Shown here piece after piece: positions 4,746 to 47,529 of a DNA stretch of 64,000 bases (position 1 is the first letter of the stretch; the number at the start of each line of letters is the position of its first letter). The stretch covers positions 27,219 through 91,218 of the forward strand of contig NW_021824839.1 of NCBI RefSeq assembly GCF_006345805.1, read 5' to 3'. The notes beneath the pieces are model-generated. The model worked only from the letters and a program-made list of their open reading frames with translations. It was not told the origin of the DNA and did no database searches. Made by a program: the position numbers and the translations under genes. Origin of the DNA: Octopus sinensis (lineage: Eukaryota).

Positions 4746-5284
4746 ATGGTCGAGTTGGCGGAAAAAATATTTTCTCTTTTGAAATCTTTGAACTTTTTCT
4801 GTTAAATTAGCCATACTATGAGAAAAATTCATAAAAATATAAAGAAAGAACAACGTTATTTATGTTATTCTGGGTGTTTAAGAAGTCCGATGGTTACAGA
4901 TCTAGGTATCACCGACATAAATTTACAAGTTTACATAAATCCCTGGAGCGATAAAAGAACTTGAAGAAACCTCCTACTGCGATTCCATAAAACGGAAATA
5001 CTTTCAGTTTTATATTTTGAATTACTGAATAAATTATATTGTTGGAGTTGTTACTGTTTTTGTTGTAGTTGTTATTTTTCGGATCAATAGCAGCACTGAT
5101 GGGGTTACTTTATGCTCACAGGTGTTCCAGTTGTGGCCAACTCGTCCTTTCCCGCCACACCCAATAGATGTAGCACTTCATTATCAAATGATTCTTTCGT
5201 TCTTTTTTCTTTTCTTTTTTTTTTTTTTTTTTGCTTTTCAGCTGATAGCTTATGTGATTTTAGGGGAATTTTGTCTTTATTTCT

Positions 5285-5960
5285 TATTTCTTTATTGCCC
5301 ACAAGGGGGTTAAACATAGAGGGGACAAACAAGAACATAGGGATTAAGTCGAGTAGGGTTAGGGATCGACTCCAGTGCGTAACTGGTACTTAATTTATCG
5401 ACTCCGAAAGGATGGAAGGCAGAGTCGACCTCGGCGGAATTTGAACTCATTCTCGACCCCAGTACACAACTGGTACGTCACTCGAAATATCTATTTCTTT
5501 ACTACCCACAAGGGACTAAACACAGAGGGGACAAACAAGGACAGACATAGGTATTAAGTCGATTACATGTAACCCAGTGCGCAACTGGTACTTAATTTAT
5601 CGACCCCGTAAGGATGAAAGGCAAAGTCGACGTCGGCGGAATTTGAACTCAGAACGTAACGTCACACGAAATACCGCTAAGTATTTCGCCCGGCGTGCTA
5701 ACGTTTCTACCAGCTCGCCGCCTTTTTTGTCTTTATTTCTACCATGTCGAATGACTACAGAGTGAAGGCGCACGATCTAGTGATCAGAGTATTGCCCTCA
5801 TTCTCGACCCCAGTACACAACTGGTACTTAATTTATCGACCCTGAAAGGATGAAAAGCAAAGTCGACCATAGCGGAATTTGAATTCAAAACGTAAAAACA
5901 GACGAAATACCGCTAAACATTTCGCCCAGCATGTTAACGTTTCTGCCAGCTCGCCGCCTT
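5285..5960 (-). mobile_element. SINE-1 cluster (three partial or complete units)
   Basis: Units of about 5285-5450, 5491-5720 and 5800-5960; heads end in ...CCAGCTCGCCGCC on the plus strand. Confidence 0.85.
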
Positions 5961-6320: not shown

Positions 6321-6549
6321 ATGGAGCTGGCAGAATCGTTAGCAAGCCGGGCGAAATGCTTTGCGGTATTTCGTCTGCCGTTACGCTATGAGTTCAAATT
6401 TCGCCGAGGTCGACTTTGCCTTTCATCCTTTCGGGGTCGATTAAATGAATACCAGTTACGTACTGGAGTCGATATAATCGACTTAATCCGTTTATCTGTC
6501 CTTGTTTGTCCCTTCTGTGTTTAGCCCCTTGTGGGTAGTAAAGAAATAG
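6321..6549 (+). mobile_element. SINE-1 monomer, type-A tail
   Basis: GAGCTGGCAGAATCGTTAGC (A box) ... GAGTTCAAATT (B box) ... TTTAGCCCCTTGTGGGTAGTAAAGAAATAG followed by GTATT. Confidence 0.9.
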
Positions 6550-6879
6550 GTATTACTAAGATATTTTCAAATTTCGCCAATATATAAGAACGTAAGTACT
6601 TAGTTACTGTGCAACACGTGGAGATTGTGTTTGAAGTGTTTATTTGGCTTATTCATTCATCTATATAGTATTACACTTTACATAATGTTTACACACTGAT
6701 GTAGAAATATTCTTATGTAAGCCGATCTGCATTCTGTAGCTCGAATTCTCCGTGATGTGGTATGTAACCTTTATGTAAGCTGTAATTACATACGTTCGAA
6801 TATTGAACTGGCTTCTACAGTCACCATTTTATGTTTGCATGTATGTTTATATTTATATTCAGTATATATATATGCTTTT

Positions 6880-10251: not shown

Positions 10252-11032
10252 GGATCTTTACCTTTTGACCTACAAATTTAAAAAATAATTTTTTGTAACT
10301 AAACACTTTCAAACTTCGGACACTGGTAGAACGTGTCATATAAAACATGTTTTACTCTTAGCATTTTTGAGAAAAACTTATATTTACGAAAATATTTCAC
10401 CTTACAGTTCTCGTATTTCGGTAATTTCAACCAATCAATGACGTGTATTCAGCTGAATAAAATTACTGCTGTTGTTTGTCGACAACAACTTCTGGCGGTG
10501 TATATTTCGTTTCTCACTGTTATTTATGATAACCCTAACCCTAAAACCTTAACCCTAACTCTAAAACGTAACCCTAACCCTAACCCTAAAACCTTAACTC
10601 TAACACTAAAACCCTAACCCTAAAACTCTAACCCTAAAACCCTAACCTAACCCTGAAACCCCAACCCTAAACCTAACCCTAACTCTAAAACCCTAACCCT
10701 AATCCTAAAACCCTAACCCTAAAACCTAAAACCAGTACAAATGCACGAACGATGTCATAAATAACAGTGACAAACGAAATATACACCGCCAGAAGTTGTT
10801 GTTGACAAACAACGGCAGTAATTTTATTCAGCTGAATACACCTCATTGATTGGTTGAAATTACCGAAATACGAGAATTTTAAGGTGAAATATCTTCGTAA
10901 ATATAAGTTTTTCTCAAAAATGCAAAGAGTAAAACATGTTTTATATGACACATTCTACAAGTGTCCGAAGTTTGAAAGTGTTTAGTTACAAAAAATTATT
11001 TTTTAAATCTGTAGGTCAAAAGGTAAAGATCC
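10252..11032. mobile_element. Foldback DNA transposon (about 280-bp TIRs, 8-bp TSD) with a degenerate (TAACCC)n core
   Basis: Starts GGATCTTTACC and ends GGTAAAGATCC; CTACATTC at 10244-10251 and 11033-11040; telomere-like repeats about 10530-10730. Confidence 0.9.
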
Positions 11033-11520: not shown

Positions 11521-11693
11521 ACACACACACATATATATATATATAGATATATATGACGGGCTTCTTTTAATTTTCGTCTACCAAATCCACTCACAACGCT
11601 TTGGCCGACCGAAGGCTATAGTAGAAGGCACTTGCCCTAAGTGCCACGCAGTGGGACAGAACCCGGTACCAGGTGGTTGGGAAGCAAGCTTCT
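11255..11693 (-). mobile_element. SINE-2 whose head is interrupted by a SINE-1 dimer
   Basis: Body and tail intact; head resumes at about 12109-12130 (TTCTTAACACACAGCCATACC). Confidence 0.8.
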
Positions 11694-12108
11694 TATTTCT
11701 TTACTGCCCGCAAGAGGTTACACACAAAGGGGACAAACAAGGACAAACAGACGGATTAAAGTCGATAATGTCGACCCCATTGCGTAACTGGTACTTATTC
11801 AATCAACCCCGAAAGGATGAAAGGCAAAGTCGACCTCGGCGGAATTTGAACTCAGAGCGTAACGGCAGACCAAATACCTATTTCTTTGCTACCCACAAGG
11901 GGCTAAACACAGAGGGGACAAACAAGGACAGACAAAGGGGTTAAGTTGATTATATCGACCCCAGTGCGTAACTGGTACTTATTTAATCGACCCCGAAAGG
12001 ATGACAGGTAAAGTTGACCTCGGAGAATTTGAACTCAGAACGTAGCGGCAGATGCAATACTGCTGAGCATTTCGTCCGGCGTGCCAGCGATTCTGCCAGC
12101 TCGCCGCC
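11694..12108 (-). mobile_element. SINE-1 dimer nested in SINE-2
   Basis: Full head at 12108, internal type-A junction at 11877/11878, outer 3' end abuts AGAA of SINE-2. Confidence 0.85.
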
Positions 12109-13031
12109 TTCTTAACACACAGCCATACCTAATAAAATTGATAAAATGAGTACCAATCGGTAAAATTGATAAATTGATAAAATGAATAGCATTCCATAAA
12201 ACGAGTTGAGGTCGATAAAATGAGAAGCAGTTAATAAAACGGGTAGTTATCAATAAAAGAAGTAACAGTTGATAAAAATAACTACTGGGGTAGATGTAAA
12301 AGAAATATTCTCAATGAAACGATGCCCCAGTATGGCCACAGCAACTCAGTGACTGGAACTAAAATAATAAAAGTGTAATTACACAGTTCATAGCTGTGTA
12401 ACCAAATGGTATTTATTCTCCGCTATAAATTCAGTAATTTTAGACAAAGAGACGAACATAAAAACATGGAAAGATAAACGAATGCCTAGTTTTTACGAGA
12501 ATCTGTCACGATGGTGAAATGAGTCATGATGTAGTTGACTCTTAGTATTGACATGCGTAGACAATTTGATCTTTTCTTGCCGCAAAAACATAACCAGAAC
12601 AAACATCCCTTGTTAGGATGACTTTCTTCACCTTTTGGCCGGGTGTGGGACAGGGTGAAGATGGCAATAGGGAAGTCACACTTACTAAGTCATTGACTTT
12701 TTTTTTTTAAGACTTCATTTTGTTGATGCTGTATTTTTTTTTTTTTTGGTATTCATTTATTTTTCGCTCTTAGTCAGATGTCAACCATATTAACTTTGAT
12801 ATCTTGACCCAGAAATAAAACTACTTTAAAATCATATTAAGGTGCATAAATATGCCAGTTGTTGCTGTTGTTGCTATTGTTGTTTAGCCCCAGACCACCC
12901 TGATCAACCACACTTAAAATATAATGAGACATTCCCTCTGGGACCAATCCCTCTTCGTTTTTTCGAGGCACTCTGTATCTAAGACAGGATTATCTGATTG
13001 ATTATTTCGGTTAGATCAAGCTGTCATTTCT

Positions 13032-13666
13032 TATTTCTTTACTGGCCACAATGGGCTACACAGAGAGGAGACAAACAAAGAAAAGACAAACGGATTAAGT
13101 CGATTATATCGACCCCAGTGCGTAACTGGTACTTATTTAATCAACCCCGAAAGGACAAAAGGCAAAGTCGACCTCGGCGGAATTTGAACTCAGAACGCAG
13201 CGGCAGACGAAATACGGCTAAGCATTTCGCCCGGCGTGCTAACGTTTCTTATTTCTTTATTGCCCACAAGGGGCTAAACATAGAGGGGACAAACAAGGAC
13301 AGACAAAGGAATTAAGTCGATTACATCGACCCCAGCGCGTAACTGATACTTAATTTATTGACCCTGAAATGATGAAAGGCAAAGTCGACCTCGGCAGAAT
13401 TTGAACTCAGAACGTAACGGCAGACGAAATACCTATTTCTTTACTACCCATAAGGGGCTAAACACAGAGAGGACAGATAAGGACAGACAAACGGATTAAG
13501 TCGATTATATAAACCCCCAGTGCGTAACTGGTCCTTAATTTATCGACGCCGAAAGGATGAAAGGCAAAGTCGACCTCGGCGGAATTTGAACTCAGAACGT
13601 AACAGCAGGCGAAATACCGCAAAGCATTTCGCCCGGCGTGCTAACGTTTCTGCCAGCTCGCCGCTT
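13032..13666 (-). mobile_element. SINE-1 trimer bounded by one 16-bp TSD
   Basis: TCAAGCTGTCATTTCT (13016-13031) and TCAAGCTGTTATTTCT (13667-13682); internal junctions at 13249/13250 and 13432/13433. Confidence 0.9.
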
Positions 13667-13804
13667 TCAAGCTGTTATTTCTGTTAGAGCAAAAGACCAC
13701 ATAAAGAAAGAATTTGCAGGTTTTTTTCTCTCATTTTTCGGAACGCACACGATCAAACAAAATATTGGTTCATAAAGTGCAAAATAAATAAAAAAAGATA
13801 AAAA

Positions 13805-16045: not shown

Positions 16046-16232
16046 GCACTTAAAAATTGGAAATACGGAGTTTGCGATCACAGTGGATGTGTTGAATGAA
16101 TGCAGATCTGATGTCTGTCGTTAATGATGTTTAACCCCAGGTGAGCCCTGACTGAGCAGACTTACGATGAATGACATTCCAGTCGTGACATCTCATTGTT
16201 TTCTTATAATTATTATTATTTGTTTGTTAGAC

Positions 16233-16580
16233 GGCGAGCTGGCAGAAACGTTAGCAAGCCGCTACGTTCTGAGTTCAAATTCCGCCGAGGTCGACTTTGC
16301 CTTTCATCCTTTTGGGGTCGATTAAATAAGTACCAGTTACGCTCTGGGGTCGATATAATCGACTTAATCCGTTTGTCTGTCCTTGTTTGTTCTCTCTGTG
16401 TTTAGCCCCATGTGGGTAGTAAAGAAATAGGTATTTCGTCTGCCGTTACGTTGTGAGTTCAAATTCCGCCGAGGTCGACTTTGCCTTTCATCCTTTCGAG
16501 GTCAATAAATTCCAGTGAAACACTTGGGACTATGTTATCGACTAGTCCCCTGCCCCCAAATGTCAGGCCTTGTACCTTGT
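16233..16580 (+). mobile_element. SINE-1 dimer (type-A junction; last unit with the alternative CCCCCAAA...GGCCTTG tail)
   Basis: GGGTAGTAAAGAAATAG|GTATTTCGTCTGCC at 16430/16431. Confidence 0.85.
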
Positions 16581-16901
16581 ACCTTTACACAAAGATGTAA
16601 GCCCAAGGACTTAACGAACTTTTTACCTTTTTCCCTTTTTATCCGTGTTCTTGTCCTTTTTCCTTTTTCCTTTTTCTCCTTTCTATATTCGTCCGATAAA
16701 CTCTAAATCATTCTGACGATGTTTGTTACATGGAACGAGATAAATGCAAATTTACCTCAAAAATAACAAACTGAAACAGCTGTAAATGTTATTTGAACTA
16801 CAATTAAACTAAGAACATTTAATACCAATGATCGACTTCTAATTGTTAATTGTTGTTCCATTTCTTTTCTCATATATATATATAGATACTACATACATAC
16901 A

Positions 16902-17542: not shown

Positions 17543-17578
17543 GACAGACAGACACACAAATAAATAGATGAGATAGAT

Positions 17579-17622
<44 letters not shown>

Positions 17623-17651
17623 GTAGGTAGGTAGGTAGATAGATAGATAGA

Positions 17652-17687
<36 letters not shown>

Positions 17688-17688
<1 letters not shown>

Positions 17689-20665
17689 GTTTTTCTTTCT
17701 TTATTAGCCACACAGGGCTGCACACAGATAGAACAATTACAAGTGAGCTTGAAGGTTTAAAAAAAAAAAAAAGGAAGGGGGAGTTTCGATCAAAGGGATC
17801 GTAAAAGGAGAGAAGAGGACAAAAAAGGGGGGTTAAAAAAAAGGGGGAGAGGAAAAAAAATTGGATCAATAGGGATCGTTATCACAGAAATGTCAATATG
17901 AAGTGTAAGGGGAGGACAGGTGAGGTTACTACCCGTGGAAAGAAAAGCCTACGGAAAAGACCACGGTACCTCGGTCAATGGAGTCACATGTTATATTTCT
18001 TTTTTTTTTTTTTTTGCGAATAAGCAACTCTCTGTTTTCAATTTCTGGGTTCATAGGATCATGCTCAGGGTGGCTTCGTCATTCATACGTGCCATTCTTG
18101 CTACATTCACCCATCTTTTTTTAAAACATTCGCTAGACAAACTTCCTTTCTCTACTCTCACGTTCCTTTTCAAGTGGTACTTGAAGAGTTGATGAGAGAT
18201 TGACCAGAGAGGAAAGTGTTTGTCTCCAATCCTTTCAGACGCGTCCACCAGATACATTCTTTCGCCATAGCCACCCAAGGATGATGAAAATAGCTCTTCC
18301 TTTCCCGTTTGAAGGAAGGAGGCGTGACAATATTGACGATAGACTCAGCTGATAAACCGACTCGTCCCACACGTGACAGCAGTTGTTCGACATAAGCCCA
18401 AGGTCGGAAATTGTTGGACACTGCACGAGTGCGTGCAGAACGGTTTTCGTCGCACTGACCGCATCTCGGCAGGTCGGCCCCGTGTTTTCTCGAGCCGTGT
18501 CTGTAGAGCTTATCCCGAACGGGTAGCGCTTCTCGGTAGCACTGCAGGCCGGGATCTCTGGAAGTTGTCCATGGGACCTGGCCCGAAAGTCGTCCTGAAC
18601 AGGCGGGTCAGGTACTCCTCGTCGACGTCCAGGTTCGCCCCGAGCTCGTCGTCGTACCTCCCCTCCACTAAACCCCTATAGAATGCTTTGGTTGTGTTGA
18701 AGTCACTCAAGGTCGACCCAGGACGGCAGAGTTGCTTGAGGGCAACGCGACACTCGCGGTGCCATTCGCCCTTCCCTCGGCCTCTTTTTGATCCACGACT
18801 GCAGTTCGCGTCATGGAGACGAGCTGCGGGAAAGCGTGCCTCACAAACGGCGACCACACCTGTTCACCGTCGTCTACATAGAGCCAGAGATGTCGCAGTC
18901 TCAGCGCGTGTCTGCGCATCATCAACCACGGCATGCCCAGCCCTCCTTTTAACGGGTGTTGACAGCAATGGATCGCCTGACCATCGGGACGCATCCTTTC
19001 CACAAGAAGCGAAAGAGAATGCGTTGTAGTTTGGTGATGGTAGGGTCGGGACAGGTACGACGGTCAGGCGGTAGGAGATGACGGACGCGATGTACGTGTT
19101 TCGCCACCTCCACCCCGACCTTTTAGGGACAGTTTCCTCTCGGCCCATTGCCGGGCGAGAGTGACCACCCTACTCGTTGTCTCGTTCCAGTTCTCTCTCC
19201 ACTTGGAGGTCCGGACCAACCCGACCCCGAGCAACTCAACCGGGCCGTCGGTCCAGCGTCCCACGACGGAGGCGCTGGTGGACGGCATGGGCTTGCTTCT
19301 TCCCAGGTGCCTAGTCGCAAGCCCACTGACTTTTCCCCGGTTGATTTTCGCTCCTGTCACCGCTTTCGTAGTTTTTTCAGTGTCTCGCCGACCTGCTCGA
19401 TGTGGCTAGACACTATGACGGTGACGTCGTCCCGCGTATGCAGACACGCTCGTCCCGCATCCCAGTTCTCGCGGGATGCCTCTCAAGGTTGCCAGCTTCC
19501 GCAATAATGCTCGAGAGTCAATACGTATAGAAGCGACGAGAGGGGGCATCCCTGACGGACCGAACGTGCGATGTCGAAGGGTCTCGATAGATGTCCATTC
19601 ACCGAATTACCGACGGATGCCTCTGTACAAAGCGGCTATCCAGCCGCGGAAGACGGACCGAAGCAGCCGCTCCGAGGACCACTTCCAAGTATCGATGGTC
19701 CCCCCTATCGAAAGCTTTCGATTGATCCAAATTGATCAGCGCCCCACCCATGCCATGTTCGTTAACTACCCTGTCTATGATGTAGCGCATCAGGTGGAGG
19801 TTGTCATGAATGGTCCGGCCTGGCACAGCGCATGTTTGCGCCTTGTCGACCAGTTTCTCGATGACAAGCGCCAACCTCTTGGCTAGCACTTTGGCCAATT
19901 TTCAAGTCTGCATTAAGCAGAGTGAATGGGCCTAAAGTTATCTATTACATTTCCCTTGTTTAGATCTTTCTTCAGCAGTGTTACGGCTCCTCGGCTCACA
20001 AAACCAGGAATGCTCCCGTTTTGCTGCCAGTTGCAGTACACCGCGCCCCAAGAGATCCCAAACAAGTCTGGCATACAATTGTAAAGCTCGTAGGGTAGAC
20101 CATCCAAACCCGGTGATTTGTCCCTCGAGCATTCTGCCATCGCTTCCTGCACTTCCGCCGCCGCCGTGATGGCACTTCGCAGCACCCTGCCTTTCTTGTC
20201 GAGAGTCGTGGTAGGCTATGTAGGTAGGCACTGAAGTCCACCCTACGTTTCTTGCCCTCCACTCGTTCCGAACAGTCGGGCAAAATGCTGCTGAAAGGCC
20301 TCACACATTTTACTTGGCTCGAGCAATTCGCGCCCCTGTTCATCTACCAGGGAGCGAATGGTGGCTTTGTTGCCCTGTTGCACCTCTGCCACCCGGGCCT
20401 CTCTCGCGGCTCCAACACCTTCGTTCCTTAGAGCACGCATCCTAGCTCTGACATCACATCCTTCGTGTTTGGCGTTGAAGTGTTGGTCGAGGGCCAACCT
20501 CGCCGCCAAAACGTCGGATGCGATGCCGCTTCTAATTGCCTCTTCTAGCTTCTTAACTAGCTCACCCTCTACTCTATTTCTATCTATGGCTAGTGCTTTG
20601 CTGTACCTAATCGCTTCTGCTTTTACTGCTCTCTTGAGGGCAAACCACCATTTGTTGTTGATGAT
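17688..20665 (-). mobile_element. 5'-truncated Tx1-clade (L1 group) non-LTR retrotransposon, copy 1
   Basis: ORF2 remnants plus about 360-bp 3' UTR ending AATAAAGAAAGAAAAA, followed by (TATC)n. Confidence 0.9.
18051..20660 (-). pseudogene. Frameshifted Tx1-type ORF2 (reverse transcriptase and C-terminal zinc knuckle)
   Basis: KSPGLDGLPYE, NFRPI, AQTCAVPGRTIHDN, LDQSKAFDR, VSAYA-DDVTV (+1 G, about 19426-19438), GAKINREKS, GGLGMP, C-x-RC..E-T-VLHALVQC; stop TGA at 18051-18053. Confidence 0.9.
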
Positions 20666-20693
20666 GGTAGATAGATAGGTATGTAGGTAGAAA

Positions 20694-20924
20694 GGCGGCG
20701 AGCTGGCAGAAACGTTAGCACGCCGGGCGAAATAATTATCGATATTTCGTCTGCCGCTACGTTCTGAGTTCAAATTCCGCCGAGGTCGACTTTACCTTTC
20801 ATTCTTTCGGGGTCGATAAATTAAGTACCAGTTACGTACTGGGGTCGATGTAATCGACTTAACCCGTTTGTCTGTCCTTGTTTGTCCCTTCTATGTTTAG
20901 CCCCTTGTGGGCAATAAAGAAATA
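20694..20924 (+). mobile_element. SINE-1 monomer, type-B tail
   Basis: GGCGGCGAGCTGGCAGAAACG head; CTATGTTTAGCCCCTTGTGGGCAATAAAGAAATA tail. Confidence 0.9.
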
Positions 20925-20933
20925 AGATGGATG

Positions 20934-20977
<44 letters not shown>

Positions 20978-21718
20978 GATAGATAGAGAGATAGATAGAT
21001 AGATAGATAGATATGCAAGCACTCGCACACGTGCATCACATGCCCTTATTCACACACACACACACACACCACACACACACACACACACACACGCACACAC
21101 ACTCACACACACACATACACACACGCACTAACATAGGCACAAGCACCCAGATACACACAAATTTACATAACTATCAACATCCACTCACACTAACCTTTGC
21201 ATATGCATACATCCGCGTACACACGCGAGCGTTTGCACGCGTCTCCCCGTGTGTTCCTAAGTATATTCCTGTATCCGAGAACGTTTCTGTCTGTGCGTTA
21301 TGGTTGGTGCTATATTTTCTTTAACTATGTGAATTGTATGATAATTCCAACGCCCTAAAACTGTACTTGCATTCTTTAAAGAAAGGACCTCGCCTATGTT
21401 TTTCCAACCTAATTTTATGGGAAATAGAGTGACATATTTTCCCTGTCCTAGGGAGAAAAAAAAAATCTGTTGTCTGTCTTAATTATTTTTATCCATAATT
21501 AATCACAAAATAAAGCTATTTATGTTTATTGTTTTATATATAATAATCAGTGCTGTGTCTGATGTGATTTTATCATGACACTTGATGTTAACACCTCTCA
21601 CCGAAATAATTTTATTATCTGTTCCACTTATATAATTAGACACACACGTGCATGCGCGCACACATAGACACACGAATACACACACACACACATACACACA
21701 TATATAAATGCATATATC

Positions 21719-23350: not shown

Positions 23351-23478
23351 TTTACTCCGGTATATATATATATATATATATATTTATAAATATATCGATT
23401 CGTGTATGCGTGTATACATACATACTTGCGTACATAAATACATGTACATGTATGTATGTGTGTATGTATGTGTGTATG

Positions 23479-23512
<34 letters not shown>

Positions 23513-23611
23513 TGTATGTATGTATGTATCTATCTATCTATCTATCTATATCTATCTATCTATCTATTCATCTATCTATCCATCTATCAATCTATCTATC
23601 TATCTATCTAT

Positions 23612-24104
23612 CTGGTGGACGCGTCTGAAAGGATTGGAGACAAACACTTTCCTCTCTGGTCAATCTCTCATCAACTTCTTCAAGTACCACTTGAAAAGGA
23701 AAGTGAGAGTAGAGAGGCAAGTTTTGTCTAGCGAATGTTTTAAAAAAAGATGGGTGAATGTAGCAAGAATGGCACGTATGAATGACGAAGCCACCTTGAG
23801 CATAGTCCTATGAACCCAGAAATCGAAAACAGAGAGTTGCTTATTTGCAAAAAAAAAAAAAAAAAAGAAATATAAAATGTGACTTCATTGACCGAGGTTA
23901 CGTGGTCTTTCCGCAGGCTTTTCTTTCACGGGTAAACCTCACCTGTCCTCCCCTTTACACTTCATATTGACATTTCTGTGATAACGATCCCTATTGATCA
24001 TTTTTTTTTTTTCCTCCCCCCCCCTTTTTTTTTTTTTTTTTTAACCCCCCTTATTTTTGTCCCTTTCTCTCCTTTTACGATCCCTTTTGATCGAACCTCC
24101 CCTT

Positions 24105-24141
<37 letters not shown>

Positions 24142-24210
24142 CCTTCAAAAGAAAAGCTCTACCTTGTAATTTTTCTATCTGTGTGCAGCCCTGTGTGGCT
24201 AATAAAGAAA
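23612..24210 (+). mobile_element. Tx1-clade LINE 3' fragment, copy 2
   Basis: High-identity reverse complement of 17690-18253; encodes WWTRLKGLETNTFLSGQSLINFFKYHLKRK...LSIVL*; inside (TATC)n. Confidence 0.9.
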
Positions 24211-24212
24211 CA

Positions 24213-24260
<48 letters not shown>

Positions 24261-24349
24261 CATCTATCTATCTGTCTTTCTATCTATCCGTCCATCTATT
24301 CATCTATCTAGCCATCTATCCATCCATCCATCCATCCATCCATCCACCC

Positions 24350-24418
<69 letters not shown>

Positions 24419-24573
24419 CCTACCTATCTATCTATCTATCTATCCATCTATCCATCTATCTATCTATCTATCTATCTATCCATCTATCCATCTATCTATC
24501 TGTCTTTCTATCTATCCGTCCATCTATTCATCTATCTAGCCATCTATCCATCCATCCATCCATCCATCCACCC

Positions 24574-24636
<63 letters not shown>

Positions 24637-24717
24637 CATCTATCCATCTATCTATCTGTCTTTCTATCTATCCGTCCATCTATTCATCTATCCATCCATC
24701 CATCCATCCATCCACCC

Positions 24718-24780
<63 letters not shown>

Positions 24781-24861
24781 CATCTATCCATCTATCTATC
24801 TGTCTTTCTATCTATCCGTCCATCTATTCATCTATCCATCCATCCATCCACCCATCCACCC

Positions 24862-24933
<72 letters not shown>
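24213..24933. repeat. (TATC/CATC)n with higher-order repeat
   Basis: Marker TGTCTTTCTATCTATCCGTCCATCTATTCATC recurs four times. Confidence 0.9.
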
Positions 24934-24935
<2 letters not shown>

Positions 24936-31646: not shown

Positions 31647-32113
31647 TTACAAGAGAAATTTGAGACTTCGTTCTAACATAATCCATTACTGTTCGAAACT
31701 TTTGTGCTACTTTTAATACAATAGAGAACAACTGATCTGACAGCCCTGCTAAAAACTAAATCTTAAGACTTGCATTTGTGCCTTAATCCTGCCAATTAAG
31801 AACGATAATTTCCTAATCTTTAGAATATCTTTTAATTTATTCAGGTTTCTTCTTCTATCGACTTGCGTCGGACATGATGACTGATGAGCTACGTATCCCG
31901 TTAATTATAGGATTTGCGTGTCATTGTTTCCTCATTATGTCGTTCAAAGTTAATTAGTATTGCTGCATAGAGCGGTGAGTTGGCAGAGTCGTTAACATGT
32001 CGGTCAAAATGGTCAGCAGTATTTCTTCTGGCTTAAAGACGGCAAGCTGGCAGAACAGGAATAGTTGGTACGCCGAAAAAAATGATTGGCGACATTTATT
32101 CCGGCTTTACGTT

Positions 32114-32213
<100 letters not shown>

Positions 32214-32892
32214 TATATATATACAGAACCCTCAAAATCAACACCTCAAAACTAATAAATATTCAAGATATGTTTCCACTGAAACAACAAAACATATAAT
32301 CCTTTCCAACCATACGGTTCCGGGTTCAGTCCCACTGCGTGGGAACTTGCGCAAGTATCTTTTTCTGCAGCCTCCGGGACGACCAAAACCTTGTGAGTGG
32401 ATTTGGTAGACGGAAACTGAAAGAAGCCCCTATAATGTACATACGTACGTATTTGTGCATCTATGTTTGTCCCCCCCCCCCATCATCGCTTGACAACCGA
32501 TGTTGGTGTGTTTACGTCAAACAATAAGCCCTGGGTTCGATTTGTTCGACTAAAGGCGGTGCTCCAGTATGGCCGCAGTCAAGCAACTGAAACAAGTAAA
32601 AGAATATGCATACATTACCATTAATAAGCAGTTATTTATTATTCGAATACCTGTCGAGGTCAACTTCGCCTTTTCGTCCTTTTGGTGTGGATAAAATAAA
32701 TGCCAGTCATATACTGGGGTCGAGGAAATCGACTATCGCATTTCCCCACAAAATTTCAGGCCTTGCATCAAGAGTAACAGGGGATTATTACAGTAGGAAA
32801 TCAATCTAAAAAACAATCAAAATAATAGCGAAATCAACATAAAACAAAGACCATTCCCTTCACTTCACTTTAGCATTATTTGTAATATTTAA

Positions 32893-33468
32893 GGCGGCGA
32901 GCTGGCAGAAACGTTAGCACGCCGGGCGAAATGCTTAGCGGTATTTCGTCTGGCGTTACGTTCTGGGCTCAAATTCCGCCGAGGTCGACTTTGCCTTTCA
33001 TCCTTTCGGGGTCAATTAAATAAGTACCAGTTGCACACTGAGTTCGATATAATCGACTTAATCCGTTTGTCTGTCCTTGTTTGTCCCCTCTGTGTTTAAC
33101 CCCTTGTGGGTAGTAAAGAAATAGGTATTTCGTCTGCTATTACGTTCTGAGTTCAAAATCCACCGAGGTCGACTTTGCTTTTCATCCTTTCAGGGTCGAT
33201 TAAATAAGTACCAGTTACGCACTGGGGTCGATATAATCGACTTAATCCGTTTGTCTGTCCTTGTTTGTCCCCTCTGTTTAGCCCCTTGTGGGTAGTAAAG
33301 AAATAGGTATTTCGTCTGTATTTACGTTCTGAGTTCAAACTCCGCCGAGGTCGACTTTGCCTTTGATCCTTTCGGGGTCGATAAATTAAGTACCAGTTAC
33401 GTACTGAGGTCGATCTAATCGACTGGCTCCCTCCCCCAAAATTTCGGGCCTTGTGTCTAGAGTAGAAA
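32893..33468 (+). mobile_element. SINE-1 trimer (two type-A junctions; last unit with the alternative tail)
   Basis: AAAGAAATAG|GTATTTCG at 33124/33125 and 33306/33307; ends CCCCCAAAATTTCGGGCCTTGTGTCTAGAGTAGAAA. Confidence 0.9.
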
Positions 33469-33489
33469 ATATTATTTGTAATATTCTTT

Positions 33490-35294: not shown

Positions 35295-35564
35295 ATTAAT
35301 TATTAGCCATGGAAGTGGTAATAATGCTAAAAGGGATGTATGTATTTGGAAGGCTTTCACGGAGTTTCCGTTTGCCAAATCCACTCACAAAGCATTGGTT
35401 AACCCAAGCTATAGGCGCAGACACTTCTCTAAGGTGCTGCGTAGTGTAACTGAACCTGAAACTATGTGGTTACGAAGCGACCTTCTTAACCACACAGTCA
35501 TGAGTGTTTCGTCAATGCTGTAGCTTAGCTTCAGTTTCTTAACGGGAGGCCAACTGAAAAATAC

Positions 35565-36020
35565 CTATTTCTTTACTACCCGCAAGGGGCTAAACACAGA
35601 GAGGACAAATAAGGACAGACAAACGGATTAAGTCGATTATATCGACCCCAGTGCGTAACTGGTACATAATTTATCGACCCCGAAAGGATGAAAGTCAAAG
35701 TCGACCTCGGCGGAATTTGAACTCAACGTAACGGCAGACGAAATACGGTTACTTATTTCGCCCGGCGTGCTAACGTTTCTGCCAGCTAGCCAACCGATAA
35801 TACCTATCTCTTTACTACCCACAAGGGGCTAAACACAGAGAGGACAGACAAACGGATTAAGTCGATTATATCGACCCCAGTGCGTAACTGGTACTTAATT
35901 TATCGACCCCGAAAGGATGAAAGACAAAGTCGACCTCGGCGGAATTTGAACTCAGAACGTAACGGCAGACGAAATACGGCTGCGCATTTCGCCCGGCGTG
36001 CTAACGTTTCTGCCAGCTCG
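35565..36020 (-). mobile_element. Two full-length SINE-1 copies separated and bounded by three copies of a 14-15-bp target repeat
   Basis: CCAACTGAAAAATAC (35550), CCAACCGATAATAC (35790), CCAACCGAAAATAC (36021). Confidence 0.85.
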
Positions 36021-36649
36021 CCAACCGAAAATACTAAGACCATCAGCGTTGTAGTAGTGGTAAAAAGAATGCCATTTCTGTTTTAACTTCAAGAGCTGGA
36101 GAAAGGGAGATTCACAGTTATTTTAACAAAGCAAGTCAGAGAAAACCAAACTAATCCGAGCACTTAACAAAATGAGATTTGCTAAATAAAAGAAAAAAAA
36201 CAAAACAAAAAGAAAAAATGGAAGAGGTATGGGAATTTCAAAAGTAGATTTTTGTACAAAGTTTATTTAGTGATAAGAACAACGCACATACATGCATACA
36301 TACATCACGCACACATTTATGTGCATACCATTATGTGAATACAGAAATTGAAAGAGTTACGTCTCTCTCTCACTAACACTCTCTCTCTCTCTCTCTCTTT
36401 TTCTCTCTCTATCTCTGTGTGTCGGCTTGTGCACAAGCATACATATATAATGCAAATATACTTCATAGGTGAAGTGCAGATATTCTCTATATAGACGACA
36501 CTTAGTGGTGCTCAAAAGATTCAGTCTTAGACTCCGATGTCTTTACAAGGGATCATTCCCCAAGGTAAAGAATGGCTGTAACAGGAATCAGGTTGAACTG
36601 GTATAGAAGCAATTATTGGGATAAATTAATTAGACACATCAATATATAT

Positions 36650-37222
36650 TCTTTTCTACACAAAACCCGAAATTTGGGGGTGGGGTAGTCGATTAGATCA
36701 ACTCCAGTAGGCAACTGGTACTTAATTTATTGAAACCGAAAGGATGAAAGGTAAAATCGACTTTGACGGAATTTGAACTCAGAACATAAAGACAGACGAA
36801 ATACCTATTTCTTTACTACCCACAAGGGGCTAAACACAGAGGGGACGAACAAGGACAGACAAACTGATTAAGACGATTATATCGACCCCAGTACGTAACT
36901 TGTACTTATTAAATCGACCCCGAAGGGATGAAAGGCAAAGTCGACCTCGTCGAAATTTGAACTCAGAACGTAGCAGCAGACGAAATACCTATTTCTTTAT
37001 TACCCACAAGGGGCTAAACACAGAGGGGACAAACAAGGACAGACATAGGTATTAAGTCGATTACATCGACCCCAGTGCGTAAGTGGTACTTATTAAATCG
37101 ACCCCGAAATGATGAAAGGCAAAGTCGACCTCGGCGGAATTTGAACTCAGAACGTAACGGCAGACTAAATACCGCTAAGCATTTCGCCCGGTATGCTAAC
37201 GATTCCGCTAAGCTCACCGCCT
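36650..37222 (-). mobile_element. SINE-1 trimer (two type-A junctions, alternative terminal tail)
   Basis: GAAATAC|CTATTTCTTT at 36804/36805 and 36988/36989. Confidence 0.9.
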
Positions 37223-37496
37223 TACACATCAAATACATTAAATATATTAAATGTGTGCGCAGTATTAAAACACATATTCACTTGCACAACATACATTATC
37301 GTTTATCTTTTACTTGTTTCAGTTATTTTATTGCGGCCATGCTTGAGCATAAGGTGGACAGCCGACAACTGATGAAGGCTCGTTCTTTATGTTACTTGTC
37401 TTGTTTTCCATTTGTTCCTCTTGTTGTTCGCATACCCATGTTTGTATTCGTATTTCATGTTGTTTACGTTTTGTGACGTTCTGTACCCATATATGC

Positions 37497-39190: not shown

Positions 39191-39463
39191 TTGGGTTTGG
39201 GTCAAATCTAAGGCTAGTGTTCGTGTGAGGGTTAGGGTTAGTCTAAGCATTAAGGTTAGGGTTCGGATTAGGAATAGGTTTAGTGTTAGGGCTGGGGTTG
39301 GAGTTAAGGTTCGGCTTTTGTTTAGGGTTAGAGTTAAGGTTAGGGTAAAGGTTAGAGTTAGAGTTCGGGTTAGGGTTAGGGTTTGAGTTCGGGTTAGGGT
39401 TAGGGTTTGAGTTCGGGTTAGGATTAGCGTGGGGGTGAAGGTAAGCATTAGTGTTAGGGTTAG
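39191..39463 (+). repeat. Degenerate interstitial telomere-like (TTAGGG)n tract
   Basis: GGGTTA hexamers mixed with GAGTTA, GGGTTC and GGGTTT variants. Confidence 0.8.
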
Positions 39464-41186: not shown

Positions 41187-42600
41187 CGGAACTGTCAAAG
41201 TGCGATATTCGAGCAATTTTGCTATTCGGCTTCAAAAATGGACGTAAAGCAGCTGAAACTGCTCGCGATATCAACGAAACGTTTGGTGAGAAAATGACCA
41301 GTGAGTGGTCAGTTCGAAAATGGTTTAAACGATTACGCAGTATAGACCTGAACCTTGAAGCTCGTGAGCGTAGTAGAGGTTCACCTGTCATCGATTAAAG
41401 ACCGGCATTGAGACCATCATTAGAGAAAGTCCGTCATTTAGAGAAAGACCGTCAATTAAAGACCGTCATTTAGAGAAAGACCGTCAATTAAAGACCGTCA
41501 TTGAGAAAGATCCACGTAAAATCACTCGAGAACTGGCAAAAGAACTTAGCCAGAAAATTGCCTGCAACCATTTGCATGCGATCGGAAAATCAAAAGATCT
41601 CGACAAATGGGTACCACACAATTTAAATGAAAATCAGAAAATGGGCAGATATGAAATTTGCTCGTCGCTTCTTCTCCGTTTCGATCCATTTCTCGACTGT
41701 ATTGTAACTTGCGACGAACAGTGAATTCTGTAGGATAATAAAAAACTTTCTATGCAGTGGCTGAACCAAAATGAAACACCGAAAACCATCCCTAAAGCCG
41801 AGCTTTTCAAAAAGAAGGTTATGGTGATTGTTTGGTGGCGCAGGAGTGGCTGTGTGGTAAGTAGCTTGCTTACCAACCACATCGTTCCGGGTTCAGTCCT
41901 ACTGCGTGGCATCTTGGGCAAGTGTCTTCTGCTATAGCCTCGGGCCGACCAATGCCTTGTGAGTGGATTTGGTAGACGGAAACTGAAAGAAGTCTGTCGT
42001 ATATATGTATATATGTATGTGTGTGTATATGTTTGTGTGTCTGTGTTTGTCCCCCTAGCATTGCTTGACAACCGATGCTGGTGTGTTTACGTCCCCGTAA
42101 CTTAGCGGTTCGGCAAAAGAGACCAATAGAATAAGTACTGGGTTTACAAAGAATAAGTCCTGGGGTCGATTTGCTCGACCAAAGGCGGTGCTCCAGCATG
42201 GCCGCAGTCAAATGACTGAAACAAGTAAAAGAGTAAAAGAGAATAAAGAGAGTGCTGTTGGACTCATCCTCTATAACTTCTTAAAACCCAGAAAAACCAT
42301 TACTGCAGAAACATATTGCCATGGAATTGCCAAAATGAAGGGAAAACTGCTACTCTTCCATCCCAGACTGGTCAACAGAAGAGGGCCAGTCATTCTTCAT
42401 GACAATGCTAAACCACACGTTTCACTAATGACGCTGCAGAAGTTGAGGGAACTTGGCTACAAAATTCTTCCTCATCCAGCTTATTCCCCAGACCTTTTTC
42501 CTACCAACTACCACTTTTTCAAGCACCTTGATGGTTTACTGCGAGAGAAGGAGTTAAAAAATCAAGCCAATCCTGAAAGTGCGTTCAAAGGGTTTTTTTT
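41187..42600 (+). pseudogene. Nearly full-length decayed mariner transposase (Hsmar1/cecropia-like), interrupted by SINE-2
   Basis: DIRAILLFGFKNGRKAAETARDIN, KWVPHNL, IVTCDE, KVMVIVWW|SINE|SAVG, LHDNAKPH, LPHPAYSPDLFPTNYHFFKHLD. Confidence 0.9.
41837..42250 (+). mobile_element. SINE-2 inserted in the mariner
   Basis: Splits WW|SAVG; full head and tail. Confidence 0.9.
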
Positions 42601-42846
42601 AGTTTAGTTTCTGTCCACCAAATCCACTCACAAGGCTATGGTCAGCCTGAGGCTATAGTAGAAGACTCTTGTCCAAGGTGCCATGCAGTGGGACTGAACT
42701 CGGAGCCATGCGGTTAGGAAGCAAGCGTCTTATCACACATCTACGCCTGCGTCTATGCATATATGTGTGTGTCATATGTCTATTTGTGTGTATGTGTGTA
42801 TATAAATGCATACATGCATACGTACATTCCTACGTACATACATACA

Positions 42847-45780: not shown

Positions 45781-46478
45781 TTTCTTTCTCCCATTCCTGT
45801 CTTTTTCTCCGTGTGTAATATAAGGATTTATTACACAAGGCCGGGTAATTTGTGGTGATGAGGAACACTTGGTTATATTGGTTTCGCGTTTTGACACAAG
45901 GCTAGCAATTTCAGGGGTGGGGTGGGGAGGTTAAGTCGATTACATCGAACCCCACCCCATCACCATTGTTCAACTGATACTTATTTTATTGACTCCGAAA
46001 TGATGGAAGCAAAATCGATCTCAGCGGAATTTGAACTCAGAACGTAAAGACGGACGAAATACCTCTTAGCATTTTACCTGGCGCAGTAACCCCGCCTTAA
46101 CACCTGATTATATTGACCAACCAGTACTTTACTAGTGCTTTATTTTATCTTCCCTAGACAACTAAAAGGTAAAGTTCATTGCCGTGAGATTTGGACTCAG
46201 AACTAAAAGGCACACAACTAAATTCGGAAAGGTATCATATCCGTCTTTCTGACGATTCTGTAAAGCAAAATCAAGACAATGCCCCTGAATAACGCAATAC
46301 ATCGCTCAACGATCTCCCGCTTAACGATCTATCACTTAACGATTACTCCGCTTAACAATAACTCGCTTAACGATACTTCGCTTTGACGATATTTTATTCT
46401 TCTAAATAAATTATAAAATTTATTTGCACGAAACTATTTTTCTTTTAACTAGCTTCAGTCATTAGACTGCGCCATTCT

Positions 46479-47081
46479 TATTTCTTTATTGCCCACGAGG
46501 GGCTAAACATAGAGGGGACAAACAAGGACAGACAAAGGGATTAAGTCGATTACATCGACCCCAGTGCGTAACTGGTACTTAATTTATCGTCCTCGAAATG
46601 ATGAAAGGCAAAGTTGACCTCAGCGGAATTTGAACTTAGAACGTAAAGACAGACAAAATAACATGAAGCATTTCACCCGACGTACTAATGATTCTTTTCT
46701 ACTCTAGTCACAAGGCCCGGAATTTTGAGGGAAGGATTAGATCGACCTCTGTACGCAACTAGTACTTAATTTATCGACCTCGAAAGGATGAAAGGCAAAG
46801 TCGACCTCAGCAGAATTTGAACTCGGAACGTAACGGTAGGCGAAATACCGATTTCTTTACTACCCACAAGGGGCTAAACACAGAGGGGAAAAACAAGGAC
46901 AGACATAGGTATTAAGTCGATTACATCGACCCCAGTGCGTAACTGGTACTTAATTTATCGACCCCGAAAGGATGAAAGGCAAAGTCGACCTCGGCGGAAT
47001 TTGAACTCAGAACGTAGCGGCAGACAAAATACCGTTATGCATTTCGCCCGGCGTGCTTACGGTTTCTGCCAGCTCGCCGCC
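46479..47081 (-). mobile_element. SINE-1 array (three units, mixed tails)
   Basis: Head at 47081, type-A-like junction at 46848/46849, alternative tail at about 46690-46740, then a type-B unit ending at 46479 against AGAA. Confidence 0.85.
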
Positions 47082-47529
47082 TCAGCTAAGCACTCATAAT
47101 GACAGCTTTAACTGTTTAATTATAACTATGCGTCTCGGTAATGTGCACGAGTGTTCGTTCAGTTTGAATGGTGACGTGTACACATATTGTTTCCACGTTG
47201 TTTTCACTACTATTTCCTCTTAAAAACTCTTGAATCAATCCATTGTGTGGGGCTATTTTTAAAGATAATGAAATAAGCTGCAGCCACACGCCAGCACTAA
47301 TTGAATAGACATACAGTTCAAAGGCTTGCTAGACGTGTCCATCCGGGTTTTTCCCAGGACAGTCCTGTCTGTTACGTCACTTTACTGAGTATTGTGAAAT
47401 TGTCCTGGTGTGTTGCTACGGATGTTTGAACTTTAGTTTCTCATATAGGAACTCTTGCTTATTTCTCGCACGTGAGCTCGAATATGTTCTATTTGATGAC
47501 CGGATATTCGATATTTAACATATATCTTT

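Follow-up and report, generated by a model that had tools for sequence, protein, structure and literature searches.

A SINE of Octopus sinensis in head-to-tail arrays with tail-specific joints inside its own head: a candidate self-targeting element

The DNA described here is a window of 64,000 nucleotides from Octopus sinensis (NCBI RefSeq assembly GCF_006345805.1, contig NW_021824839.1, positions 27,219 to 91,218), and the subject is a family of short interspersed elements (SINEs) within it, called SINE-1. Most SINE-1 loci within the window are arrays of units arranged head to tail. The joints between units lie at fixed positions in the head of the element's own family, the position depends on the tail subtype of the unit upstream, and the motif at the joint is also the motif at which that tail subtype meets ordinary genomic DNA; we have not found this combination described in the literature. 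Because adjacent units differ in subfamily, the data support an origin of the joints by retrotransposition rather than by tandem duplication of DNA. For the route taken, we lean towards sequential insertion of new copies into resident heads, which we would put a little short of an even chance, and a mixture of sequential insertion and single-event jumping between RNA templates is quite possible.

SINE-1 units were located by a BLAST search of the whole window with one unit as the query, which gives about 23 good units of about 232 bp each at 10 loci. The sample is thus a single 64-kb window with about 10 SINE-1 loci and 12 internal joints; the window has about 39% G+C and is rich in microsatellites and TTAGGG-type runs. 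Positions in the element refer to a consensus of about 232 bp in which GGCGGCGAGC is position 1, AGAAACG starts at 15 and GTATTTCG starts at 49. The units are short, non-coding and dispersed, and at loci A, D, G, H and I they are flanked by target-site duplications (TSDs), which are 14-16 bp long. Their tail is homologous to the 3' end of a long interspersed element (LINE) in the same window, as expected of a LINE-dependent SINE. By comparison, SINEs make up 11.6% of the O. vulgaris genome, and about a tenth of octopus genomes (PMC13282606).

The head contains a B-box-like GAGTTCAAATTCC, seen by eye. ARAGORN finds no tRNA in SINE-1, a tRNA match is also missing from the Rfam results, even with E allowed up to 10, and the predicted fold of the head is a long hairpin with no cloverleaf. 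Within it, a 13-bp hairpin capped by a tetraloop is predicted for positions 31-60 (for example at window 13594-13659, and likewise in all other SINE-1 heads and in those of the O. bimaculoides DNA introduced below). The hairpin is paired in 95% of cells in an alignment of 20 copies from two species, with two compensatory pairs; a compensatory U·G to G-C change occurs in units H1 and H2. The loop and the pairs next to it (39-48) are hypervariable among copies, monomers included, and the joint between positions 48 and 49 adjoins the apical loop. Positions 50-54 read TATTT, a non-canonical type of RNA polymerase III (Pol III) terminator that has been documented for mammalian SINEs (PMC8466645); the unit consensus has no internal TTTT.

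When all units are aligned, they fall into subfamilies defined by several linked diagnostic sites: GATAAATTAAG or GATTAAATAAG; GTAATC, ATAATC or CTAATC; TTAATACCTATGTC or TTAATCCGTTTGTC; CTCTGTG or CTCTATG; and the tail type. A tails end in …GGGTAGTAAAGAAATAG, and B and hybrid tails in …AAAGAAATA, more fully …GGGCAATAAAGAAATA and variants of it. An earlier note, made from the letters of the window, had described two tail subtypes; the division between A and B/hybrid tails by target motif stands, and a third family that the note had not set apart, alt (…CTAATCGACTGGC.CCCTCCCCCAAAATTTCGGGCCTTGTGCCTAGAGTAGAAAAG), is present in arrays E, G, I and J. Comparison DNA was available as 76 kb of O. bimaculoides (L003), reached through a query with the antisense open reading frame of the SINE: the translated antisense frame of SINE-1 is 88% identical to the uncharacterized O. 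bimaculoides protein LOC106868243. This DNA was used solely to characterise alt units and the joints they form. In those 76 kb the alt family is abundant as full-length monomers, and there are no A-type tails and one B-type tail, against 12 and 6 in the 64-kb window. Exact scans of metagenome and genome contig collections gave no match to the SINE core.

The rule that connects tails with targets can be read directly from the sequence that follows each tail. GTATT directly follows the A tail at 6550, 11877, 13432, 16431, 33125, 33307, 35564, 35803, 36804, 36988 and 46848, and ATATT follows the twelfth A tail at 5490. AGAA or AGAT follows all six B or hybrid tails (5284, 11693, 13031, 13249, 20925 and 46478). 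These are the 18 positions listed in the earlier note, and every one is correct. Since GTATT occurs at a frequency of 0.00136 per strand-site and AGA[AT] at 0.0118, the rule is far beyond chance: the five independent terminal B/hybrid tails would all precede AGA[AT] by chance with a probability of about 2e-10, and the perfect 12/6 split of motifs between tail types is one arrangement in 18,564, although the 18 cases are not fully independent, in that H1 and H2 (35564 and 35803) share one locus.

Both motifs occur in the SINE-1 head, as the note had observed, and that is where the arrays resume: nine internal joints are at position 49 (GTATTTCG) and one is at position 15 (AGAAACG). The ATATT at 5490 is the B-subfamily variant of position 49, also found in monomer F1, and not a mutated target. 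Two internal joints follow alt tails, one between J2 and J3 in the window and one in O. bimaculoides, and both read …GTAGAAAAG followed by AATC(A/G)TTAG. With the common head variant AGAATCG, these joints fall at head site 15-17, the same as the joint after a B tail; J3 itself starts with AATCATTAG, which is that variant.

At genomic targets, the motif lies inside the TSD: GTATT at locus H, and AGAA at loci A, D and C. TSDs at B/hybrid array ends begin with AGAAATAA at A and D and with AGAAG at C, and the start AGA[AT] recurs at 5/5 such ends, a small number that nevertheless gives the recurrent TSD start of a target-specific element. At alt array ends the TSDs begin (A)ATAT/ATTATT, and one O. 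bimaculoides B copy has a TSD that starts with AATA. The earlier note had extended the rule to three sites outside SINE-1. Two of these hold, namely locus H (35564) and array C within another SINE (11693). The third, at 6550, is probably a decayed SINE-1 unit, as suggested by collinear matches of the flank after B1 to SINE positions 76, 129 and 137 (P 0.015-0.05); the upstream flank of B1, compared with the head as a possible decayed copy, gave no significant match. A cryptic SINE at locus H was considered as well and rejected, since a search of the flanks found no SINE homology. Array C interrupts a CORE-type SINE-2 between …TTAAGAAG and CTTGC, with the short TSD AGAAG. The SINE-2 family has a CORE-like GGTTCCGGGTTCAGTCCCACTGCGTGGCAC…CTTGGGCAAGTG motif and is present at window positions 11640-11693, 12112-12135 and 32300-32600.

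The arrays and the other features are listed in the table.

Table. SINE-1 arrays, single SINE-1 units and LINE copies in the window
Feature	Position	Strand	Structure	Subfamilies, 5' to 3'
Array A	5269-5740	-	A1 full length, A tail; A2 from position 49, B tail	A-i, B
B1	6324-6640	+	5'-truncated A-type unit (6324-6549), then GTATTAC…	
Array C	11694-12116	-	C1 full length, A tail; C2 from position 49, hybrid tail	A-ii, hybrid
Outer TSD of array D, downstream copy	13016-13031	-	AGAAATGACAGCTTGA	
Array D (trimer)	13032-13666	-	D1, D2, D3	A-iii, B, hybrid
D3	13032-13249	-	From head position 15 (AGAAACG), tail GGCCAGTAAAGAAATA	hybrid
D2	13250-13432	-	From head position 49 (GTATTTCG), tail GGGCAATAAAGAAATA	B
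D1	13433-13666	-	Full length, starting AAGCGGCGAGC, A tail GGGTAGTAAAGAAATAG	A-iii
Outer TSD of array D, upstream copy	13667-13682	-	AGAAATAACAGCTTGA; 15/16 identical to 13016-13031	
Array E	16230-16600	+	E1 with A tail, head positions ~29-60 deleted; E2 from position 49, different older tail	A-ii, older tail
LINE, first copy	17696-20650	-	Degenerate, 5'-truncated; reverse transcriptase (RT) fragments; (TATC)n on both sides	
F1	20687-20924	+	Monomeric B-type unit in (AGAT)n; AGATGGAT after tail	
LINE, second copy	23614-24210	+	Shorter, with the 3' end of the same LINE; flanked on either side by (TATC)n	
Array G	32875-33485	+	A unit; A unit from position 49; alt-tail unit from position 49	A-ii, A-ii, alt
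Locus H	35550-36034	-	TSD-SINE-TSD-SINE-TSD; two A-type units, both starting at position 6	
Array I	36634-37235	-	A unit; A unit from position 49; alt-tail unit from position 49	A-i, A-ii, alt
Array J	46479-47085	-	A unit; alt-tail unit from position 49; B-tail unit from ~15-17	A-i, alt, B

Each array as a whole has one TSD. It is a perfect 16 bp at A (AGAAATAAAGACAAAA, 5725-5740 and 5269-5284), 15/16 at D, a perfect 15 bp at G (ATTATTTGTAATATT) and a gapped match, TATT(T)GATGTGT, at I. The trimer at D, which was the focus of the earlier note, is as the note described it, with one outer TSD of 16 bp starting with AGAA and one internal joint of each type. No TSD is evident at array J, where the flanks 46399-46478 and 47086-47140 are inverted repeats of each other (…CAGTTAAAGCTGTCATTA… and …TAATGACTGAAGCTAGTTAA…), and array J may lie in the loop of a foldback element or one resembling a miniature inverted-repeat transposable element (MITE). 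Arrays A, D, G and I share an anatomy in which a full-length 5' partner is joined to a 5'-truncated 3' partner within a single outer TSD. This is the anatomy of chimeric retrocopies, but it does not decide between mechanisms, because a nested insertion closed by homology predicts the same arrangement.

Duplication at the DNA level, by tandem duplication or unequal crossing-over to give a SINE-derived mini-satellite, is very unlikely. The overall architecture does match that of arrays in Scapharca broughtonii (PMC11481361), Tandem Repeats Finder (TRF) reports periods of 182-217 bp, and I1 and I2 have one exclusive variant in common. Against this, the sites that mark subfamilies differ between adjacent units, as does even the tail family, exclusive variants shared between neighbours number 3 in 11 pairs, not above the background of 0.11 per pair, and homologous exchange cannot create a joint from a tail to position 49. 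D3, the hybrid unit of array D, has two exclusive variants in common with C2. Locus H could be explained by unequal exchange between TSD copies (GTATTTTCGGTTGG, GTATTATCGGTTGG and GTATTTTTCAGTTGG). Its two units are 95.9% identical, and 5/9 of the substitutions fall within positions 38-46, which are hypervariable; it therefore appears more likely that one site took two insertions independently than that DNA was duplicated.

A multimeric master element is also unlikely, if somewhat less so. Here the joint between the A tail and position 49 would have originated a single time or a few times, and 'A tail + GTATT' would be the linker of a dimeric or trimeric SINE, like that between the arms of Alu, with transcription and retrotransposition of the entire multimer. 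The downstream units would owe their variety to gene conversion, or to homologous template switching, within the core they share. Consistent with this are the linkage of the A tail to GTATT or ATATT in 12/12 cases, the identical architecture of G and I, the chimeric cores of E2, J2 and J3, and the lack of an internal TTTT, which would make Pol III read-through possible. However, the 8 arrays contain at least 7 different unit combinations; the first units of G and I are of different subfamilies, and the two arrays have no unit-specific private variants in common; G3 and I3 are already alt-type at 61-63, so that a crossover would be needed within 12 nt of the joint; and at locus H, A units end an insertion, with GTATT within the TSD. 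The earlier note had named a multimeric master or a circular RNA as findings that would speak against its proposal, and the arrays, with their mixed subfamilies, do not have the make-up of either. The simplest forms of these explanations, plain tandem duplication and a single multimer master, are excluded by neighbouring units of different subfamilies, and circular-RNA or rolling-circle copying was rejected on the same kind of evidence, the differences in subfamily between units of one array.

Clues to the retrotransposition machinery come from the LINE. Both copies in the window end in …TCTGTGTGCAGCCCTGTGTGGCTAATAAAGAAA, and over their last 50 nt they match the SINE-1 tail at 79% identity (37/47 aligned bases). 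In 2/2 copies there is (TATC)n on both sides (17560-21013 and 23475-24935), which makes this LINE a candidate (TATC)n-specific, microsatellite-targeting element. Microsatellite-specific LINEs are known among Tx1-clade families (PMC4494074). The location of both copies with a SINE-like 3' end in (TATC)n is our reason for regarding the machinery used by SINE-1 as target-selective. The best homologue of the LINE fragment is in the octopod Argonauta; the LINE of the window is known from RT fragments only, and a homologous LINE protein, P0004, carries the apurinic/apyrimidinic (AP) endonuclease domain PF03372. Two loci with LINE homologues were checked for SINE-1, one from Argonauta and one from ENA, and neither contains it. 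The B-type monomer F1 lies in the same (TATC)n microsatellite as the LINE, in the opposite orientation.

With such a partner, sequential growth could proceed as follows. SINE-1 would combine a Pol III-type head with a tail borrowed from a target-specific LINE with an AP-type endonuclease. At each joint, the 3' end of an incoming SINE-1 RNA would be copied from a DNA 3' end at one of two fixed positions in a resident head. For A-type RNAs the priming nick would most likely lie before GTATT(T)CG (head position 49, next to the apical loop of the hairpin), and B- and alt-type RNAs would use A-rich sites, for instance AGAA(A/T) at head position 15; the priming motifs in heads would be the same as those in ordinary DNA. 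A staggered second nick would leave a top-strand overhang of 14-16 nt, homologous to the new cDNA and able to anneal to it, a step that needs a resident SINE head in the same orientation. The 5' side would then close with no internal TSD or second head. With each repetition the array would gain a unit on its 5' side, and the only TSD left would be that of the first insertion, the 3'-most one. What the sequence itself shows is the anatomy of the arrays, the motif rule, the single TSDs, the mixed units, the homology of the tail to the LINE and the microsatellite targets of the LINE; we infer the nicking of heads by the endonuclease, the closure by homology and the order of events.

A narrower proposal, which we advance tentatively, is that the A subfamily is a site-specific self-targeting element: its own family's head would hold its preferred site, GTATTTCG, with a TATTT terminator-like run at the tip of the conserved hairpin. 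A new insertion would truncate an older copy at one exact base, close seamlessly by homology and recreate both target and terminator for the new copy, and arrays would be built up from the 5' end. As the five bases after the A tail overlap the TATTT run, A-type RNAs transcribed from arrays may end in …AUAGGUAUU(U), and such an end would pair with any DNA 3' end complementary to GTATTT, be it that of a nicked genomic site or that of a cDNA just past head positions 54-49. This would explain, whether growth is sequential or occurs in one event, why the type-A target is a piece of the head. In site-specific LINEs such as R1, read-through target sequence guides integration. The abundance of sites also matters: 62-68% of the GGTATTT and GTATTTC sites in the window fall inside SINE-1 heads, so a preference for 7 nt suffices to place about 9 of the 10-11 A-type events in heads. 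RNAs of type A that prime at these sites must strike heads, given where most of the sites are.

Serial template jumping in one event is the other explanation to take seriously, and we regard it as possible but doubtful. In this case the RT would start on the 3'-most RNA at the genomic target, jump on reaching head position 49 or 15 to the 3' end of another SINE-1 RNA, perhaps repeatedly, and copy the last RNA to its 5' end. The jumps could be fixed in position in two ways. The A-type RNAs may end in the TATTT of the next unit, with a 3' GGUAUUU that pairs with the cDNA end, or else the donor RNAs may be cut in loops (between C14 and A15, and between C47 and G48), where the enzyme would run off and jump end to end. 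Sequential insertion and one-event jumping share a chemical step, in which a SINE RNA is copied from its 3' end with a DNA 3' end as the primer. They differ in what that primer is, a nicked resident head in the former and the growing cDNA of another SINE in the latter.

Jumping by its nature gives a first unit of full length, joints without a seam and only one outer TSD, and the TATTT terminators known from mammals (PMC8466645) would supply suitable RNA ends. LINE enzymes are known to make end-to-end jumps and chimeric retrocopies (cited in PMC4494074; PMC2104539), and the O. bimaculoides DNA has head-to-tail units joined at positions 1, ~10 and ~15-17. On the other hand, jumping would be needed at about 8/10 loci. 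The rates known for chimeric retrocopies in vivo are far below this. Jumping alone gives no account of the same motifs starting TSDs at non-SINE targets, in particular at H, which was apparently used twice, unless 3' read-through is assumed as well. It also leaves unexplained the absence of A units from positions 3' of B or alt units, the aged look of the 3' units in I and J, and the decay of the remnant after B1, and the window shows no solo unit with a start at 49 or 15.

Sequential growth from the 3' end predicts that 5' units are younger, and several comparisons between units, based on 100-230 nt per unit, bear on this. A-type units are never downstream of B or alt units; together with the absence of A tails from the 76 kb of O. 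bimaculoides, their constant 5' position suggests that the 5' units belong to a younger family. Compared with their 5' neighbours, units I3, J2 and J3 and the remnant after B1 appear to be older. Private substitutions total 28 in 3'-terminal units and 10 in first units, with the last unit having at least as many as the first in 7/7 arrays (one tie) and a clear difference in I and J, but this excess is biased, as the 3' units come from poorly sampled subfamilies. The units that stand as monomers or in a sandwich (B1, F1, H1 and H2) have changes at 0/88 CpG positions, compared with about 9% in array units; either these are the youngest copies, or CpG loss is faster in arrays.

Besides the sampling bias, a number of observations weigh against sequential insertion. 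Divergence from the unit's own subfamily shows no gradient in arrays D, G and A, where ages are roughly uniform as jumping would have it. CpGs are mostly intact, and the difference between first units (85%) and last units (77%) is not significant. None of the nine or more head joints has the sandwich form expected of an insertion not closed by homology (head 1-64, a full new copy, then 49 onwards), so closure would have to be near-obligatory. Diagnostic position 61 is C in SINE-1 and T in alt, and G2 and I2 have C where the downstream G3 and I3 have T. A simple retention of the 14-nt old overhang therefore did not happen, and trimming or mismatch repair has to be assumed, whereas in a template jump G2 and I2 would simply keep their own base. 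Positions 49-64 of neighbouring units are mostly uninformative, although A1 and A2 have one exclusively shared variant there and a second by eye. Mosaic units (E2, J2 and J3), a patch in A2 and a fusion at 31970-32112 show that template switching or recombination is at work here, and are features in which jumping would find support. An AGAA internal joint occurs only at 13249, the other five AGAA/AGAT cases being array ends. Finally, all of this comes from about 10 loci in one 64-kb window.

The earlier note had suggested a test of whether 5' units are younger than terminal ones, and the arrays of the window have no consistent gradient from young 5' to old 3' units. Its broader proposal of repeated, site-preferring insertion fares better in part: the same motifs are found at joints and genomic targets, and the TSDs are single, but separate insertions over time do not follow from the unit ages.

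Two of the irregular structures just mentioned can be described further. The patch in A2 (5446-5474, 29 nt, ACCAGTTGTGTACTGGGGTCGAGAATGAG) is identical to A0 at 5797-5825 (minus strand). The sequence is native to A0, which belongs to the third tail family, and sits in A2 between positions ~70 and 77, bounded by GT and TGAG microhomologies, a signature of a template switch or a short gene conversion. At 31970-32112, a head fragment 1-64 is fused directly to the complete head of an old alt-like SINE, which continues to 32640-32790. The fragment ends in the T run of a TCTTT-equivalent, terminator-like site, and its last position, 64, equals 49 plus a TSD of 16 nt. The alt-like SINE is itself split by (TA)n and SINE-2, and no matching position-49 unit follows. 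In O. bimaculoides, three alt-type SINEs lie head to tail at L003 65990-66620; the last two are joined tail to full head with no spacer and appear to share a decayed TSD (TGCTAGATGGA and TACTAAATAGA), and in this pair the 5' unit is the more diverged one.

Telomere-type repeats were seen in several places. Unit A2 has CCCTAACCCTA in place of GTAA (5354-5364), and in O. bimaculoides a (TTAGGG)n run at L003 ~69670-69700 has grown from the GCTTAG of a head loop. Interstitial (TAACCC)n and (AGGGTT)n occur in the window at 10530-10733 and 39228-39463. Separately, the window contains a fragment of a mariner-type transposase (42188-42607; PF01359 in homologues), with closest relatives outside the cephalopods at no more than 61% identity and no octopus proteins among the matches to the query.

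Several known systems resemble parts of what we describe. In crocodilians, the target-specific SINEU-3 is driven by Tx1-Mar, a target-specific LINE of the Tx1 clade (Kojima 2015, PMC4494074). As there, SINE-1 would share the insertion preference of a target-specific LINE, and has TSDs of fixed sequence. Tandem SINEU-3 copies sandwich a TSD after sequential insertion, and locus H has exactly this form. The window LINE lies in a microsatellite, like Kibi, Koshi and the crocodilian (TTCC)n and (TTTC)n families. Unlike SINEU-3, SINE-1 has its preferred site in its own head and forms nested head-to-tail arrays with no internal TSDs, and it has two tail subtypes with two motifs.

Two classes of SINE array are described from bivalves (Martelossi et al. 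2024, PMC11481361): TSD1-(SINE)n-TSD1, which has been attributed to unequal recombination, and TSD1-(SINE-TSD1)n. The first class is likewise from molluscs, with a complete first head, a shared head truncation in later units and a single TSD. However, internal units in bivalves are also tail-truncated and all belong to one family, whereas in SINE-1 every unit has a complete tail, subfamilies are mixed and the joint motif is the genomic target motif.

Template jumping by LINE RTs is known from U6-L1 chimeras, tripartite Magnaporthe chimeras (PMC2104539) and end-to-end jumps of R2. These chimeric retrocopies also fuse a 5' full-length copy to a 5'-truncated one within one TSD, and double jumps are documented, but the known chimeras are rare and have variable joints, whereas SINE-1 loci are mostly arrays, with two fixed joints correlated with tail type. 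In rodents, a large fraction of Dip, B1 and B2 copies are multimers, and the same question arises of whether they come from insertion into a neighbouring tail or from a dimeric template (PMC8466645). SINE-1 resembles these and Alu-type dimers in the large share of copies in head-to-tail multimers; the mammalian multimers are full-length units joined at A-rich tails, and in SINE-1 the downstream units are cut at precise head positions.

For annotation, the joints have a practical consequence: merging of fragments in the style of RepeatMasker would hide them and would miscount copies and ages. The joints are also an easily counted genome-wide signature whichever mechanism applies, and insertion in sequence and insertion in one event make opposite predictions for orthologous loci in the sequenced Octopus species. 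If template jumps are responsible, RT switching would occur here at a frequency and precision not reported in vivo. If insertion is instead site-preferring, as we tend to think, a SINE can take over the target choice of a microsatellite-specific LINE, sharpen it and direct it at its own family, making tandem DNA with no recombination and opening a route from dispersed repeats to proto-satellites. Self-targeting would then also offer a retrotransposition-based origin for the TSD1-(SINE)n-TSD1 arrays of other molluscs.

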